Assembly (NCBI RefSeq): GCF_006345805.1
Contig: NW_021829777.1
Location: 1-6,013 of the forward strand
Source: Octopus sinensis
Taxonomy: Eukaryota
Length of the DNA: 6,013 nucleotides
Reading direction: 5' to 3'
The translations under genes and the position numbers were made by a program. Positions 1 to 6,013 of this stretch are shown piece after piece. The notes beneath the pieces were generated by a model. The model did not search any database, was not told the DNA's origin, and saw only the letters and a program-made list of their open reading frames with translations. Within the stretch, counting starts at the first letter, position 1; every line of letters begins with the position of its first letter.

Positions 1-62
1 CCTTCATAGCAGTGCCCCAGCATGGCCGCACTCCAGTGAAAAGACAGAAAGATAAATATAAA
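1..62 (+). mobile_element. 3' end of SINE family 1, diverged, cut by the window edge, opposite orientation to the other copies
   Basis: 9-30 GCAGTGCCCCAGCATGGCCGCA matches the reverse complement of TGCGGCCATGCTGGAGCACCGC at ~1480-1501 (2 mismatches in 22); followed by an A-rich AAAGA/AAATA tail. Confidence 0.65.
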
Positions 63-204
63 AGAGAATCAACGATAGTACACAAACTTCCGCCACCCAC
101 GCATGCGCGTCCATTTATTGTTGTTTTGTTTTTTTTTTCCTTCTTTCGTAAAATAGTCAGAAACCGTGCTCCCGGGGGTCGCCGAATGAGAGGAGCATTT
201 GTCG

Positions 205-306
205 CTGATGATAATGACGTTGTTGTTATTGTTATTGATGATGATGTTGATGATGATGATGATGAGGAGGAGGAGGAGGAGGAGAATGAGGATGGTGGGG
301 GGGGGG
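205..306. repeat. Compound (GAT)n/(GTT)n/(GAG)n low-complexity tract ending in G10
   Basis: Direct reading of the trinucleotide runs. Confidence 0.9.
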
Positions 307-371
307 TGATGATTCTGCGTAGGAGTTTCGTTAAATCCACCTTTTTTTTTGCCCATTTACCGACAAAAATA

Positions 372-577
372 TGGTGGTGGTGGTGGTGGTGGTGGTAGTG
401 GTGGTGGTAGTGGTGGTAGTGGTGGCTCTGGTGACAGTGTTGATGATGATGATGATGATGGCGACGACGACGATGACGATGATGATGATGATGATGATGA
501 TGATGTGATGATATGATGATGATGATGGTAATGACGATGTCGGAGCCTGTTGTTGTGATGGTGATGATGATGATGAT
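372..577. repeat. (GGT)n/(AGT) tract followed by (GAT)n/(GAC)n tract
   Basis: 372-425 GGT repeats; ~440-540 GAT repeats with two 1-nt slips near 505-513. Confidence 0.95.
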
Positions 578-632
578 CGTGGGCGTTAGGATAGTGCTAG
601 TAGCGGTGGAGAGAGAGATGGGGGGGGCTTAC

Positions 633-1345
633 ATCCAGCAAAGCGCCTGTGAACCGGTGGGACGCGACAAAAAAACCACAGCCGAGGGCGGCGATTGCAC
701 TCTTTTTGCTTAGGGTAATCCGGGATCTCCCACGTGGTTTCATTTCATTGGAGGACGAGGAGGAAGACGAAGAAGAGGGTGAGAGTGATGCCAGTGGTGG
801 TGGGGTGGTAGTGGTGGTGGTGGTGGTGGTGGTGGTGGCGGTAGTAGTGGTGGTGGTGGTGGTAGTGGTGGTGGTGGTGGTAGGTGGTGGTGGTAGGTGG
901 TGGTAGTGGTGGTGGTGTGTGTGGTAGTGGTGTGGTGGTGGTGGTGGTAGGTGGTGGTAGTGGTGGTTTGTTGGGGGTGGTGGTGGTGGTGTTGTGGTGG
1001 TGGTGGTTGTGGTGGTGGTGGTGGTAGTGGTTGTGGTGGTGGTGGTAGTAGTGGTAGTGGTGGTGGTGGTGGTTGTGGTGGTGGTGGTGGTGGTAGTGGT
1101 GGTGGTGGTTGTGGTGGTAGCAACCGTTGTCCATATGGTGACTTTGCGGATACTTGCTTCGTTCGTGTAGGTGGTGGTAATCGAAATTTTGTTAATGATG
1201 GCGATGATGCTGATGATGGTTATACTGGTGATGACAACGACGGCGACAATAATATGATTTGGATGATGATGAAAACAACGAAGACGACGATGATGATGAT
1301 GATCACGGCGTTGACTAAAATGGCGGTGCTTTGTCACGTGATACG
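633..1345 (-). CDS. Possible internal exon encoding a Thr/His/Pro/Ser-rich low-complexity polypeptide; no recognised domain
   Basis: Lies within ORF 597-1355(-). Minus strand has an acceptor-like TTATGTTTTTATGTTTGTAG| ending at 1346 and a donor-like GAT|GTAAGC at 632-627. The open frame is weak evidence because ACC/CAC/CCA repeats contain no stops. Confidence 0.2.
794..1120. repeat. Long imperfect (GGT)n microsatellite with AGT/TGT variants
   Basis: About 325 nt of GGT units with several register slips between ~880 and ~975. Confidence 0.95.
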
Positions 1346-1436
1346 CTACAAACATAAAAACATAACATATTTAGAAACACGAGAACGGGAGGGCCCTCCG
1401 CCCCCGCTGCACGGGTTTGACCGACTGAATAAGTGG

Positions 1437-1821
1437 TACTCTCTCTCTTTTACTCTTTTACTTGTTTCAGTCATTTGACTGCGGCCATGCTGGAGCACCG
1501 CCTTTAGTCGACCAAATCGACCCCGGGACTTATTCTTTGTAAGCCCAGTACTTATTCTATCGGTCTTCTTTTGCCGAACCGCTAAGTGACGGGGACGTAA
1601 ACAATGTTAGGAGGACAAACACACAAACACATACATATATATATATATACATATATACGACAGGCTTCTTTCAGTTTCCGTCTACCAAATCCACTCACAA
1701 GGCATTGGTCGGCCCGAGGCTATAGTAAAAGACACTTGCCCAAGATGCCACGCAGTGGAACTGAACCCGGAACCATGTGGTTGGTTAGCAAGCTACTTAC
1801 CACACAGCCACTCCTGCGCCT
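1437..1821 (-). mobile_element. tRNA-derived SINE family 1, near full-length copy 1 (CORE-like)
   Basis: Minus strand: Pol III A box TGGCTGTGTGG (1810-1800), B box GGTTCAGTTCC (1767-1757), TCTTGGGCAAGT (1745-1734), internal TA/CA microsatellite (~1620-1656), 3' body and (AAAAGAGT)-type tail. 1657-1810 matches 3274-3427 at 147/154. Confidence 0.93.
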
Positions 1822-1863
1822 ATGTATTGAGTACTTCCCCACGGCCGTTCCTTATGTTAATAA

Positions 1864-2010
1864 TTGTATGTATATACATCCGTATATGAATGCGTATACA
1901 ATATAACATATATAATTTATAAAACATTATATATATATTACATATATACATTACATTACATATTAATATATATGCAAAAACATGTGTGTGTCTGTCTGTT
2001 TTTATATATG
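1864..2010. repeat. Degenerate (TA)n/(TACA)n AT-rich tract
   Basis: Direct reading. Confidence 0.8.
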
Positions 2011-2019
2011 TATGCCCCA

Positions 2020-2125
2020 TCCTCCTTAATCCCTTCTTTCTCCTTTTCTCTTGGTCACTGATTCTGTCCCCTGCCTTCCACCCTCTTTGATTCCCTCTCT
2101 CTCTGTCTCTCTTTCTCTCTCTCCT
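2020..2125. repeat. Polypyrimidine (CT)-rich tract
   Basis: Almost entirely C/T on the plus strand, with (CT)n runs at ~2094-2123. Confidence 0.8.
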
Positions 2126-2570
2126 GCGACCTGCTTGCTCTCTTAACCATTCTGTGCCCTTCGTATCTCTCGACCAACATGTGTCCCGTCCCCGCTACCG
2201 AAACGGTAATTATTTCTACGCCAGCTGCTATGTTGTTGTTGTTTCTGTCTCATTTGGTCTAAAGTCGTATGACAACCACCGTTATATATATTTTGTTTAT
2301 TCATTACTGTTTTCAATTTCGTTTTCGTCTCTTGTATTCACATCCGTCTTGTGCGTTCCATTCCTGTCTTCTACCAAGAAATCTAATGCTTACAGCTTAG
2401 TTTTTTTTCTTGGGGCTGGCCGAGTTGGAGCAAATATCAGAATTGAACAGCCGAAATTTGCTATGATGATTCGTGTCTGACTGAAGATTGAAGGGTTCGA
2501 ATGATTTGTCTGTGTTCCGTGTTCGTCCCTTCCTGTATTTCACGTTCATTATATATAAAACATTCATTTT

Positions 2571-2597
2571 CTTTATATATTATATATATATATATAT

Positions 2598-2632
<35 letters not shown>

Positions 2633-2670
2633 ATAGATAGATAGATTAGATAGATAGATAGATAGATAGA
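2571..2670. repeat. (TA)n followed by (TAGA)n microsatellite
   Basis: TA run to ~2632, then TAGA units to 2670. Confidence 0.95.
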
Positions 2671-3026
2671 AACCAGAGTCCCGTCGAAACTCTGGCTACA
2701 TAGACGAAAGTGCATATTTTCTATAATTTAATTCAACTAAAACGGAGACTAAGGTTTTCAACATGGCTTCCATCATGGTGGACGTAGAGTTCGATGTGAT
2801 TAGCGAGATTCACAATGAATTCGATGCAGTTATTCCGTGCCTCCATCAATTAGAGCATATTCAACGATCTAGAATTGATGGTCACCTTGCATGTGTGTAT
2901 ATATATTATGTGTGTTTGTCGGTGGGTGGGTGCGTGCGTGCATGTGTGCATGCGTGTACGTGTGTATGCATATTTACATATATATGCACACATAAGCATT
3001 TATTTATTTGTATGTATATATATATA

Positions 3027-3427
3027 TACTCTCTTTCTCTCTTTTACTTGTTTCAGTCATTTGACTGCGGCCATGCTGGAGCACCGCCTTTAATCGAGCA
3101 ACCCGGCCCCGGGACTTATTCTTTTGTAAGCCCAGTACTTATTCTAGCGGTCTCTTTTGCCGAACCGCTAAGTAACGGGGACATAAACACACCAGCATCG
3201 GTTGTCAAGCAATGCTAGGGGACAAACACAGACACACAAACACACACACATACACATATATATATGCACATATACGACAGGCTTCTTTCAGTTTCCGTAT
3301 ACCAAATCCACTCACAAGGCATTGGTCGGCCCGGGGCTATAGCAGAAGACACTTGCCCAAGGTGCCACGGAGTGGGACTGAACCCGGAACCATGTGGTTG
3401 GTTAGCAAGCTACTTACCACACAGCCA
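3027..3427 (-). mobile_element. tRNA-derived SINE family 1, copy 2 (lacks the 11 most 5' nt of copy 1)
   Basis: A box TGGCTGTGTGG (3427-3417), B box GGTTCAGTCCC (3384-3374), CCTTGGGCAAGT (3362-3351), internal (CA)/(TA) tract, colinear with copy 1. Confidence 0.93.
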
Positions 3428-3461
3428 ATTATATATATAATTTTATTATTTTATTTTTTTT

Positions 3462-3640
3462 TTATTTCAGGCTTTTGTCTGCGGCCATGCTGGAGCACCG
3501 ACTTTAATCGAACAAATCGATTATTCTTTCTCAGCTTAGTACTTATTTCTATTGATCTTTTGGCTCGTCGCTAAGTTATGGGGACGTAAACACACCAACA
3601 CTTGTGACTATCGATGGTGGGGGAACAAACACAGATACAT
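3462..3640 (-). mobile_element. SINE family 1, older headless copy 3 (3' body only)
   Basis: CTGCGGCCATGCTGGAGCACCG, TAGTACTTATT, GCTAAGTTATGGGGACGTAAACACACCA and CAAACACAGA are colinear with copies 1 and 2 but more diverged; ends in the (TA)n tract with no tRNA head. Confidence 0.85.
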
Positions 3641-3654
3641 GTACATGTATCTTG

Positions 3655-3658
3655 TATG

Positions 3659-3741
<83 letters not shown>

Positions 3742-3772
3742 ATATATATATATTATATTTATATATATATAT
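3655..3772. repeat. Long (TA)n microsatellite
   Basis: Direct reading. Confidence 0.97.
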
Positions 3773-4035
3773 ATAAATGAAAGAATGGAGTTGAAGACAT
3801 TAAAACAAAATTCCTTTATTCTCGACATATAAAGGAATTTTGTTAAATCGTCGTTCAACTCCATTCTTTCATTTATTTGTATTAAAAATAAAAACACAAC
3901 AATTTCCACACGAAAGCACGTGATCTCTGCCCTTGGCATGTAGCTTCAACCGTGTTTTTCTGACGTGAATTTCTACCCAGGTATTGGTTAACCGAATTAT
4001 CCATAATAAGATAATTCATTCAACTACTTAAATAT
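3773..4035 (-). mobile_element. Element family R, copy A: non-autonomous repeat with the hammerhead core missing
   Basis: Direct-orientation homology to 4669-5035 (3902-4035 vs 4898-5035, roughly 80-85% by eye); 23-bp perfect inverted repeat 3773-3795/3854-3876. Strand assigned from the ribozyme in copy B. Confidence 0.75.
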
Positions 4036-4103
4036 TATATATATATATATATATATACATACATACATACTTACATATATTTATATACATACATGGATAT
4101 ATG
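4036..4103. repeat. (TA)n/(TACA)n microsatellite
   Basis: Direct reading. Confidence 0.9.
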
Positions 4104-4139
4104 TATCATGATTGATGGCTAGCCATTTAACCTTTTTCT

Positions 4140-4318
4140 ATTTCCTCTCCCTGTTTATTTCTGTGTTCCTTTCTGATGACGAGCATAGGCTCGAAACGTA
4201 AAAGACTTTCTCACTTCCCTTGCGTTAAACTAATACATCTGTTTGTTGTTTACACGCCCGTGTTCCTCTTTTGTTTTGTTTGTTTTTGGGGGTTTTTTTT
4301 GTAAATTCCAACTATATA
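4140..4318 (+). mobile_element. Element family H, copy 1: probable Penelope-like pLTR remnant carrying a minimal hammerhead motif
   Basis: Colinear with 4400-4550 (TTCCTTTCTG..TAGGCT.GAAA..TAAAAGACTTT..AAACTAATACA..TACAC..AAATT.CAACTATA); contains CTGATGA..GAAACGTA. Left boundary approximate. Confidence 0.6.
4169..4204 (+). ncRNA. Minimal type I hammerhead ribozyme motif (imperfect)
   Basis: CUUU(4169-72) CUGAUGA(4173-79) C GAGC-AUAG-GCUC GAAA(4193-96) CGUA(4197-4200) AAAG(4201-04): 4-bp helix I, 4-bp helix II with one extra C, palindromic ACGU helix III, GUA triplet. Confidence 0.6.
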
Positions 4319-4399
4319 AGTATAAATCGCTTTCTATCAACCTTTTTTTCCAATCATTCGCCATGCTGGACCGCAGGAGACTACAAGTTTTTTATTCTC

Positions 4400-4550
4400 T
4401 ATCTTTTTAGTTTGTCTTATTCCTTTCTGTTGGAGGTCGTAGGCTTGAAATATAAAAGACTTTTTCGCATTCCCGAGTGTCAAACTAATACAGTAGCTTG
4501 TTGCTCATACACCTATCTTCGTCTATTTTGTTCTATAAATTTCAACTATA
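4400..4550 (+). mobile_element. Element family H, copy 2 (hammerhead core decayed)
   Basis: Direct repeat of copy 1 at a 254-nt offset; core reads CTGTTGGAGGTCGTAGGCTTGAAATATA. Left boundary approximate. Confidence 0.6.
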
Positions 4551-4593
4551 TATATAGGTATATAGTTGAGAGTTATAGAAAAAAAAGACGAGA

Positions 4594-4603
4594 CATATAT
4601 ATA

Positions 4604-4648
<45 letters not shown>

Positions 4649-4668
4649 TATATATAATATATATATAT
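4594..4668. repeat. (TA)n microsatellite
   Basis: Direct reading. Confidence 0.95.
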
Positions 4669-5031
4669 TATATGAAAGAATGGAGTTGAATGACTAGTTA
4701 ACAATATCCTTTATTCTCGACATATGTTTCGAAGGCTGCATATTCCTAATTCCGAAGGAATAAGGAGTTACTTATGCAGATTTCTCATCAGGAAAATCAA
4801 GGAACTTATGTCGACATCAAAATGCACAAAAAACTTTTAGCTGACCGCTCTCAACTCCATTCTTTCATATATTTATAATTTTAAAATAAACATACACATT
4901 TCCGCACGAAGATACGTAGTCTATGCCCTAGGGACGTAGCTTCAACCGTGTTCTTTCTGATGTGAATTTGCTACCCAGGTATCGGTTATCTTTCGAATTA
5001 TCCTTAATAGATAATTCATTCAAGTACTCAA

Positions 5032-5035
<4 letters not shown>
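4669..5035 (-). mobile_element. Element family R, copy B: hammerhead-containing non-autonomous retroelement (retrozyme- or Penelope-pLTR-like)
   Basis: 21-bp inverted repeat 4669-4689/4851-4871 encloses an intact hammerhead; a further ~160 nt are shared with copy A; both ends abut (TA)n. Confidence 0.75.
4707..4803 (-). ncRNA. Type I hammerhead ribozyme with full conserved core; predicted cleavage after GUC between 4719 and 4718
   Basis: Minus strand: UCCUUGAUUUUC CUGAUGA(4791-4785) GAA-AU-CUGCAUA...UAUGCAG-CC-UUC GAAA(4730-4727) CAUAUG UC(4720-4719) GAGAAUAAAGGA. Helix I has 11 pairs (one G-U) with one G.A mismatch; helix II is 3 bp + 2x2 loop + 7 bp plus a distal hairpin; helix III is A-U, C-G around AUAU. 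Confidence 0.85.
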
Positions 5036-5066
<31 letters not shown>

Positions 5067-5085
5067 ATATATTATATATATATAT
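5036..5085. repeat. (TA)n microsatellite
   Basis: Direct reading. Confidence 0.95.
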
Positions 5086-5153
5086 CACTTTTTTGAAACA
5101 CATGAATCCGGAGAAGCACACACTAAGAAGCAGGGCAGTCTATATTTGTCACT

Positions 5154-5374
5154 GGTGAAAGCCGGTTTAAAGGGTTACCCTGGGTTTCTCGCCATAAAGG
5201 GTACTTTGTGACCTATCTGCAGAGCCCAAGACGTGTTGGCCTATAGCCTCTTAAAGATATGGAGGGATATTCTAAATAGGCTACAGGCCAACAGGTCTTC
5301 GGGTCTGAAGATACGCGATAATGGTGCCCTTTATGCCGCGAAACCCAGGATAGTACTATAAACCGGCCTTCACC
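5154..5374. repeat. Long imperfect inverted repeat (fold-back or MITE-like), arms 5154-5249 and 5278-5374
   Basis: Outer 50 nt of the arms match 41/50 (GGTGAAAGCCGGTTTA.. vs ..TAAACCGGCCTTCACC); inner ends TGTTGGCCTATAGCCT / AGGCTACAGGCCAACA match 15/16; 28-nt spacer. Confidence 0.9.
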
Positions 5375-5379
5375 TACAA

Positions 5380-5381
<2 letters not shown>

Positions 5382-5471
<90 letters not shown>

Positions 5472-5488
5472 TATACATATATTGTATT

Positions 5489-5541
<53 letters not shown>

Positions 5542-5543
5542 AT
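5382..5543. repeat. Compound (TA)n microsatellite
   Basis: Direct reading. Confidence 0.97.
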
Positions 5544-5551
5544 ACACACAT

Positions 5552-5940
5552 GGGCCGCAATGGCCCAGTGGTTAGGGCAGCGGACTCACGGTCATAGATC
5601 GCGGTTTCGATTCCCAGACCGGGCGTTGTGAGTGGTTATTGAGCGAAAACACCTAAAAGCTCTACGAGGCTCCGGCAGGGGATGGTGGTGATCCCTGCTG
5701 TACTCTTTCACCACAACATTCTCTCACTCTTACTTCCTGTTTCTGTTGTACCTGTATTTCAAAGGGCCGACCTTGTCACTCTCTGTGTCACGCTGAATAT
5801 CCCCGAGATACTACGTTAAGGGTGCACGTGTCTGTGGAGTGCTCAGCCACTTACACGTTAATTTCACGAGCAGGCTGTTCCGTTGATTCGGATCAACTGG
5901 AACCCTCGTCGTCGTAACCGACGGAGTGCTTCCATCCCCA
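5552..5940 (+). mobile_element. tRNA-derived SINE family 2, apparently full length
   Basis: A box TGGCCCAGTGG (5561-5571, fits TRGCNNARYGG); B-box-like GGTTTCGATTCC (5603-5614); GACTCACGGTCATAGAT resembles a tRNA-Arg anticodon arm; ~330-nt non-tRNA body, not homologous to family 1, ends at a short CCATCCCCA tail. Not a functional tRNA: no clean acceptor stem. Confidence 0.8.
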
Positions 5941-6013
5941 TATACACACACACACACGTATAAATACACGTTTTTATGCATGCATATGTGTAAACAGGTA
6001 TATCTATCTTTAT

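Follow-up and report, generated by a model that had tools for sequence, protein, structure and literature searches.

A type I hammerhead ribozyme motif with a palindromic helix III in an abundant Penelope-like element of Octopus sinensis

We analysed a 6,013-nt stretch of Octopus sinensis DNA (contig NW_021829777.1, positions 1 to 6,013, hereafter the window). On its minus strand, at 4707..4803, the window carries a complete type I hammerhead ribozyme motif, with helix I open and helices II and III closed, which was recognised by reading the minus strand, by fold prediction and by a descriptor scan. The motif lies in an inverted, 5'-truncated fragment of a Penelope-like element (PLE) at 4669..4850 on the minus strand. 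This fragment meets a second truncated copy of the element, at 4851..5031 on the plus strand, head-to-head. On reading the sequence, (TA)n-rich microsatellites flank the pair on the left (4605..4668) and on the right (5033..5090). Our data indicate that the hammerhead is the standard ribozyme of a very abundant PLE, present here in a dead truncated copy, and that it belongs to a known kind of RNA.

The hammerhead motif and its insertion in the window

The catalytic core on the minus strand consists of CUGAUGA (C3-A9) at 4791-4785, GAAA (G12-A15.1) at 4730-4727, which was invariant in both alignments A1 and A3, and the cleavage triplet GUC at 4721-4719. We found the whole type I core consensus (C3 U4 G5 A6 N7 G8 A9, G12 A13 A14, A15.1-U16.1, H17), including U4720 and C4719. 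Three helices surround the core and both ends of the motif lie in helix I, which is the type I topology. From the hammerhead consensus, in which the cut follows GUH, cleavage is predicted between C4719 (position 17) and G4718 (position 1.1), at 4718..4719 on the minus strand.

Helix I pairs its 5' strand (4792..4803) with its 3' strand (4707..4718, both on the minus strand) from C4792:G4718 to U4803:A4707. It covers 12 positions with one G4798.A4712 mismatch and one U4794.G4716 wobble, and in all families of the element a mismatch or loop follows after 6 bp. Helix II (4731..4784, minus strand, 54 nt), read from the minus strand and folded with ViennaRNA, begins with G4784:C4731, A4783:U4732 and A4782:U4733. 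A 2x2 internal loop follows, then a 7-bp stem (C4779-A4773 with U4742-G4736), another internal loop and a distal 4+5-bp hairpin. ViennaRNA closes this hairpin as AUUCC/GGAAU with a UUC triloop. An earlier reading of the same DNA, made from the letters without database searches (the sequence-only reading), had proposed a C(UUCG)G closure; this was not borne out, and the UUCG loop is not conserved in sister families, where AUCC, AUCG, CUCG and UGUG are found in its place. Helix III consists of ACAUAUGU (4720..4727, minus strand; minus-strand reading and cofold), which is a perfect palindrome. As a monomer it forms 2 bp, A4727:U4720 and C4726:G4721, around the loop AUAU. Every core and helix coordinate that the sequence-only reading had given for a complete type I hammerhead at 4707-4803 was confirmed on reading, as was its palindromic 8-nt helix III of 2 bp in the monomer.

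We scanned the window with our own RNAMotif-like descriptor, which describes the core plus three helices. Exactly one site was found in the window, compared with 5 in 2000 dinucleotide-preserving shuffles of the window (0.0025 per window), and shuffled loci contained one site in 2.5 Mb. Thus the single site expected from the sequence-only reading was recovered and is rare in shuffles, and a chance origin of the motif is excluded. A core-only match (CUGAAGA ... GAAA ... UA) without helices lies at 5305-5355 on the plus strand of the window. We rejected this match as a second hammerhead since it is at chance level, with at least one such match in 29 of 200 shuffles.

The Rfam library behaved differently. 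Rfam 15 gave no hammerhead match at the gathering threshold on the 6-kb window, nor at E<=10 on 401 nt, and it is the filters that lose the motif. When 121 nt were searched with Rfam Hammerhead_1 (RF00163), the full model (1-45/45) aligned to 4713-4797 on the minus strand with 29.2 bits (E=8.3e-6). The alignment carries a 50-nt insertion in helix II, because of which the score falls below the RF00163 gathering score of 34; a sister copy scored 31.0 bits. The comparison with Rfam that had been suggested together with the sequence-only reading therefore succeeded in the full-length alignment and failed in the score. Our own covariance model, R1, gave 103.4 bits at 4705-4805. R1 missed the hammerheads of the foreign relatives described below, for which it is too family-specific.

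The fragment with the hammerhead (4669..4850) was 94.7% identical by blastn to the full-length copy L047. It corresponds to element positions of about 3199-3395 of this 3547-bp copy and runs to what we call the short 3' end. Between the cleavage site and this end lies a block (4669..4718, minus strand) that is a conserved part of the 3' untranslated region (UTR). The main copy (4851..5031) is 5'-truncated to the last 182 nt of the element, up to the long 3' end, and matches L047 3365-3546 at 94.5% identity by blastn. Where the two copies meet head-to-head, the 20 nt that they share form an inverted repeat (4851-4870 and 4669-4688). A single insertion into a (TA)n tract left the window copy as an inverted, 5'-truncated by-product. 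This copy is a 182-bp inverted fragment without an open reading frame (ORF) or a known promoter. It is most likely a non-functional fossil, and its cleavage would depend on read-through from outside.

An older head-to-head pair of the PLE 3' end is found in the window at 3753-4028, flanked by TA and about 82% identical to the full copy. The two arms meet at about 3824-3831, and the 5' truncation of each stops within a few bases of the hammerhead cut site, so that the ribozyme core is missing there.

The host element

The genome that we searched comprises 2.72 Gb in 13,516 contigs. The 221-nt region around the motif gave 1,514 first-look candidates, and those that were scored were 92-97% identical. 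Typical genomic copies reach past the window copy on both sides. Their 5' truncation varies, (TA)n flanks them, and they often form head-to-head pairs whose junctions differ. The signature CCUGANGAGA-N45-56-GAAACAYRUGUH was found in at least 8,218 genomic copies with an intact core, whereas the reversed control pattern gave 0; such copy numbers derive from IUPAC patterns, not from covariance-model searches. Membership of a repeat family, which the sequence-only reading had assumed, is thereby established.

The longer copies contain one ORF, of 787 amino acids in L044 and, counted from the ATG, of 902 in L076 and 895 in L078. Reverse transcriptase (RT) motifs can be read in these ORFs. The RT was not seen by Pfam-A (RVT_1), neither with the ORFs singly nor with all 26 aligned homologues, nor by phmmer and profile searches of PDB sequences. 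The C-terminus of the ORF shows the pattern VYxYIG..R..NH..E..N on reading, and the Pfam GIY-YIG match is weak (E=6e-4, 20.5 bits, below the cut-off of 22.6). An AlphaFold2 model built on 26 homologues reached a mean predicted local distance difference test score (pLDDT) of 74.7. In a Foldseek search of the PDB the best matches were the telomerase RTs 6zdq_A (E=2.5e-8) and 3du5_A (E=7.7e-8), followed by DRT, retron and group II intron RTs. This fold search decided the assignment: on the predicted structure, the ORF encodes a reverse transcriptase related to telomerase RT. The RT of PLEs is the sister of TERT (PMC8557442), thus a TERT-like fold match is as expected of a Penelope-like element.

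The family consensus (alignment A2) contains RxRWK, ADKT, CNCRxxxxC, which is the CxCX5C linker, and CNLC..E..N..CRH, and is without CCHH. In copies of the studied genome RW(L), DKT, CxxC and CxH are present and the CxCX5C linker is missing. The hallmarks of the Hydra clade are RWK, DKT, the CxCX5C linker, CxxC/CxH around E and N, no CCHH, a (TA)n target and a canonical hammerhead, and the clade includes molluscan members (PMC8557442). Judged from its motifs, the element is a PLE with hallmarks of this clade. It shares with the members described by Craig et al. 2021 (PMC8557442) the single RT ORF with a C-terminal GIY-YIG, putative here, the motifs, the (TA)n insertion and the hammerhead. In contrast to their length of <3 kb, the element measures about 3.5-3.6 kb, because long disordered N/S-rich inserts replace the CxCX5C linker. 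The ORFs at L076:2425-5133 and L078:2450-5137 contain two long inserts of this kind (pLDDT <50 at residues 488-558 and 631-772), one of which occupies the place of the CxCX5C zinc-finger linker of the family consensus.

Full copies revealed where the hammerhead sits. In L078, direct repeats at 1673-2253 and 5294-5874 (582 bp, 99.1% identity) flank the ORF, and each repeat holds one hammerhead on the ORF strand, at 2110 and 5731, a spacing of 3.6 kb. In L076 the hammerheads are at 2088 and 5762 on the ORF strand, and this locus has a direct repeat and an upstream inverted 5'-truncated copy. The direct pseudo-long terminal repeats (pLTRs) of L076 and L078 measure 442-582 bp, are 98.6-99.1% identical and each contain a hammerhead. 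A full insertion thus has one hammerhead before the ORF and one after it, about 3.6 kb apart and on the same strand. L047 consists of an inverted copy and then a 3,547-bp main copy, and all three loci are bounded by (TA)n. A pLTR together with an inverted 5'-truncated copy is the textbook PLE arrangement (PMC8557442). We consider it very probable that a type I hammerhead is carried by every member of this large PLE group, about 0.55-0.6 kb downstream of the ORF with its RT and putative GIY-YIG domain and inside the pLTR.

We found that insertions stop at either of two 3' ends 156-185 nt apart and that the inverted copy always stops at the proximal one. The two ends are seen at L047:4551 and 4707, and in the window at 4669 and 5031. 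The extension between them (156-185 bp) resembles a much longer version of the 30-40-bp 'tail' described for PLEs, which in an Anolis PLE is defined by two internal sites at which the RT starts (PMC11167929).

The best named protein relatives of the ORF come from the octopod Argonauta hians, whose protein P0004 belongs together with 39 homologues to a family that escapes Pfam RVT_1 and PDB sequence searches. No convincing hammerhead was found within 4 kb of the ORF at the Argonauta locus L068. A public homologue from Argonauta carries the name 'GATA zinc finger domain-containing protein 14-like' and is probably a misannotated transposon ORF. Foreign relatives of the PLE protein with hammerheads in the pLTR position are L073 and L075, which are marine metagenome contigs (one of them TARA), and L069. 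L073 and L075 combine an 11-bp helix II with the 10-nt palindrome ACAAAUUUGU, and L069 has a 55-nt helix II, the palindrome AUAAAUUUAU and a weak helix I. The studied genome also contains further hammerhead families, including those on the minus strands of L038 and L039, with an unrelated long helix II and the palindromes ACAAUUGU and ACAGCUGU; one further family has a GGCC...GGCC helix II with ACCGAGGU. These families probably belong to other PLE lineages.

Conservation of the core, the helices and the palindrome

Twenty loci were chosen by the similarity of their RT segment alone (65-91% amino acid identity), which makes them a non-circular test of the core. An intact hammerhead was found on the ORF strand and 3' of the ORF in 19 of the 20 loci, and the twentieth has a 1-nt deletion in the hammerhead core. 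Among 36 aligned copies the core varies at position 7 only (U/A/C/G), an invariance that is partly circular as the copies, including 20 added ones, were chosen by patterns that require the core. Families carry GUC, GUA or GUU at the cleavage site, which is GUH in all. Within the 3' UTR, conservation is highest over the hammerhead and the 50 nt that follow it, where the mean pairwise identity is 0.73-0.83 compared with 0.2-0.6 in most of the remaining UTR. The conservation of the core in homologous copies that the sequence-only reading called for is thus present.

Covariation was scored in two alignments, both from related sequences of one genome with few independent changes. In the MAFFT alignment of 18 sequences, 80.5% of cells were paired (slid controls 33-50%), with 13 double-changed pairs and a score of 0.216 (controls 0.04-0.12). 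In alignment A3 (36 sequences), which was itself fitted to the model structure, 80.5% of cells were paired (controls 35-49%), with 17 double-changed pairs and a score of 0.234 (controls 0.07-0.13). The covariation in helices I and II that was to be sought in a copy alignment lies above the slid controls. The inner 5-6 pairs of helix I covary across families, and one of them is UA in 13 copies, CG in 12 and UG in 8. In helix II the 12 proximal pairs reach 87-88% pairing, and 6-7 of them are compensatory. The span of helix II is 53-58 nt in 35 of the 36 copies, and the length that the sequence-only reading found unusual is thus conserved across families. Taken together, the comparisons indicate that the ribozyme is homologous across diverged families, with the core kept, helices I and II covarying and the palindrome maintained.

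For the window copy, the minimum free energy (MFE) dimer predicted by RNAcofold was a double hammerhead whose two strands share an 8-bp intermolecular helix III; it lies 7.4 kcal/mol below two monomers. A double hammerhead was likewise the predicted dimer in four of five families. At the family level the centre of the palindrome is always self-pairing, as UA, CG or UG, and as AU and GC in further families (AAUU and AGCU centres). The UG centre occurs in 1,979 copies and is the fixed state in at least six families. Its mirror, CA, would be expected about as readily by a single transition; in contrast to the 1,979 UG copies, CA is found in 48 scattered copies only. Being adjacent, the two nucleotides at the centre are unable to pair with each other inside a single strand. 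The constraint acts at the level of RNA, because U.G pairs in RNA yet spoils a DNA palindrome. The self-pairing centre, kept by compensatory and wobble changes, supports a fit to dimeric cleavage, and for this the comparative evidence is stronger than the fold energies. Published work holds that metazoan type I hammerheads in which helix III is short and palindromic, those of PLEs among them, function in dimeric form (PMC4209133; PMC6765202). In full copies of the element the two pLTR hammerheads could dimerise in cis. The UG centres and the scarcity of CA provide direct comparative support for the long-standing but weakly tested idea of RNA dimers.

Role of cleavage and alternative readings

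We propose that in transcripts of an active element two hammerheads would pair via the palindrome to give a double hammerhead joined by 8 bp of helix III. The partners could be the two pLTR copies of one RNA or copies on separate RNAs. The paired RNA would then be cut after GUC or GUA, leaving 5'-OH and 2',3'-cyclic phosphate ends, and this cutting would trim longer-than-unit transcripts to unit length. A monomer with its 2-bp helix III should have poor activity. The conserved bipartite helix II of roughly 22 bp probably stabilises the fold without recognisable loop-loop contacts, or is a protein-binding arm.

Besides the relatedness of the aligned sequences and the Rfam score of the window copy, several observations weigh against this picture. 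We recognised no known motif for a loop-loop tertiary contact between helices I and II, and the internal loop of helix II, kept in the window's family, is missing in some other families. The hammerhead fold of the monomer (-22.3 kcal/mol) lies above the minimum of -24.5 kcal/mol and is slightly destabilised by the 2-bp helix III; when the 221 nt of genomic context are folded, a rod-like alternative prevails. Most close genomic pairs are head-to-head and incapable of forming dimers in cis. In vitro, cleavage by PLE hammerheads is reported to be poor, also in dimeric form (PMC4209133). Finally, in the window's subfamily, with the offset of the cut site counted, only 2 copies start at G1.1 compared with 369 in which the junction is intact. 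The lack of a 5'-end pile-up at the cut site suggests that cleaved RNA is not the usual template, and so bears on the purpose of the ribozyme. For an Anolis PLE, uncleaved RNA was inserted in vitro and cleavage was dispensable (PMC11167929).

The rod-like fold of the window's family arises from upstream GUCGACAU (4805-4813), which can pair with AUGUCGAG (4717-4724, minus strand) over the cleavage site. We considered this helix as a general feature that masks the cleavage site and rejected it, as it is not conserved in other families.

Some observations speak for a mainly non-catalytic role, in which the palindrome serves as an RNA dimerisation site, or helix II with the 50-nt block as an arm recognised by the RT, or both, while cleavage is incidental or vestigial. 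Conservation spans the hammerhead and the stretch up to the short 3' end as a single block, just downstream lie the two alternative sites where insertions stop, the PLE RT is known to initiate at internal RNA sites with hammerhead cleavage dispensable in vitro (PMC11167929), and no accumulation of insertion 5' ends is seen at the cut site. However, the invariant nucleotides are exactly those of the catalytic core, and the one that varies is N7, which tolerates any base. In addition, a GUH site is present in all families, and a purely structural role would not require it. We therefore regard a mainly non-catalytic role as rather unlikely. Because exactly the catalytic nucleotides are strictly conserved and N7 alone is free, the comparison argues that catalysis itself is selected.

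A broader proposal would join catalysis to such roles. The hammerhead, the bipartite helix II and the 50-nt block may be one functional RNA module of Hydra-clade PLEs. In such a module the palindrome would dimerise RNAs, matching a dimeric RT-endonuclease, helix II and the block would place the RT at its internal start, cleavage and ligation would give circular unit-length templates, and over-copying of these would make the pseudo-LTRs. We put this forward as a speculation with only a small chance of being right; if true, it would make the hammerhead a packaging and priming device, not a mere trimming one.

The sequence-only reading had placed the motif among the kinds found in PLEs or in metazoan retrozymes. 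The former part is supported by the ORF, the pLTRs and the TERT-like fold, and the latter is not, since tandem arrays were absent among the first 100 signature matches. A retrozyme would be a short, tandemly repeated non-autonomous unit that yields small circular RNAs through its hammerheads. Many genomic copies are indeed short and without an ORF, and animal retrozymes have been proposed to derive from PLEs (bioRxiv 10.64898/2026.07.22.740005). Yet variable 5' truncation accounts for the short copies, and full copies have an ORF between two hammerheads. Furthermore, among the first 100 of the 8,218 signature matches no two lay in tandem on one strand at a distance below about 6 kb, whereas 17 pairs were head-to-head. 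A retrozyme is accordingly a very unlikely identity for this repeat.

Even less probable is that the ACAYRUGU palindrome is a site in DNA, for a dimeric protein or for the endonuclease of the element, and not an RNA helix. Perfect DNA palindromes do occur in several families (ACATATGT, ACACGTGT, ACAATTGT and ACAGCTGT). However, ACATGTGT, the state of at least six families and 1,979 copies, is no DNA palindrome yet pairs in RNA via U.G, and its mirror ACACATGT is found only as 48 scattered mutants.

Hardly credible, finally, is a chance hammerhead-like motif in a palindromic foldback resembling a miniature inverted-repeat transposable element (MITE), with the inverted repeats and (TA)n marking a derivative of a DNA transposon and helix I being no more than a part of its long inverted repeat: a perfect 20-nt inverted repeat and TA repeats enclose the 182-bp copy, the window copy folds into a rod (z=-5.9) and a second short palindromic copy lies at 3753-4028, but the inverted repeat marks where two 5'-truncated copies of a 3.5-kb retroelement are joined head-to-head, the motif is kept, with covariation, in 19 of 20 diverged RT-anchored copies, and the signature occurs 8,218 times versus 0 for the control, with 0.0025 descriptor matches per shuffled window. 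The 20-nt inverted repeat with its TA flanks was taken for a MITE terminus at one stage, and this assignment was dropped after full copies showed the head-to-head PLE architecture.

As a PLE ribozyme, the octopus motif can be compared with those already described. Closest to it are the published PLE hammerheads (Cervera & de la Pena 2014, PMC4209133; Lunse, Weinberg & Breaker 2017 via PMC6765202) and the Rfam family Hammerhead_1. The published PLE hammerheads are likewise of type I and lie in pLTRs that flank an RT ORF with a GIY-YIG domain, which is putative here. They also share a short palindromic helix III that implies dimeric action, a larger-than-usual helix II and, in most copies, G10.1-C11.1. 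The differences are in four places. Helix II is 53-58 nt here (about 22 bp in two segments), in contrast to 6-8 bp. The bulged nucleotide between A9 and G10.1 is absent. Helix I is long, with 6 bp, a mismatch or loop and a distal stem. Helix III is present (2 bp and 4 nt), whereas it is deleted in 'min-HHR'. With RF00163 the motif shares the full-length alignment, the core, the 6-bp helix I and the 8-nt palindromic helix III of the family consensus, and it differs by the extra 50 nt in helix II.

The hammerheads of retrozymes and satellites such as newt satellite 2 and Schistosoma Sm-alpha are active only as dimers (Cervera & de la Pena 2020, PMC7229834), and they share the type I topology, the 6 bp of helix I and the small palindromic loop on a helix III of 1-2 bp. 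They differ in forming short head-to-tail tandem units and small circular RNAs, while the octopus element was without tandem arrays among the first 100 matches. Their helix II is of about 4 bp with its loop contacting loop 1, unlike the very long helix II found here.

Relative to known PLE hammerheads the novelty is modest. The octopus motif is a structural variant with a 50-nt extension of helix II, and a smaller difference is the lack of a bulge before G10.1. In the full-text literature we found no hammerhead described in transposons of octopus or other cephalopods; supplementary tables (e.g. those of Craig et al. 2021) lay beyond this scope. A cephalopod-type genome joins the hosts of PLE hammerheads, at a scale of at least 8,218 copies with an intact core. 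The standard Rfam route misses the whole set, because the conserved 50-nt helix II extension lowers the score and fails the filters. As a consequence, annotators of mollusc genomes would under-count ribozymes and mislabel ORFs. The many diverged families within one genome amount to an unusually clean natural mutagenesis series.

Other repeats were noted in the window. A SINE-like (short interspersed nuclear element-like) repeat with GTCATTTGACTGCGGCCATGCTGGAGCACCGCC is present three times, at 1443-1810, 3029-3427 and 3443-3600, and two of these copies lie within a larger duplicated unit of about 370-400 bp with 92-93% identity. A long tract rich in GAT, GGT and GAG trinucleotides extends over 196-1340 with a GC skew of up to +0.85, and could be low-complexity coding sequence or a microsatellite cluster.

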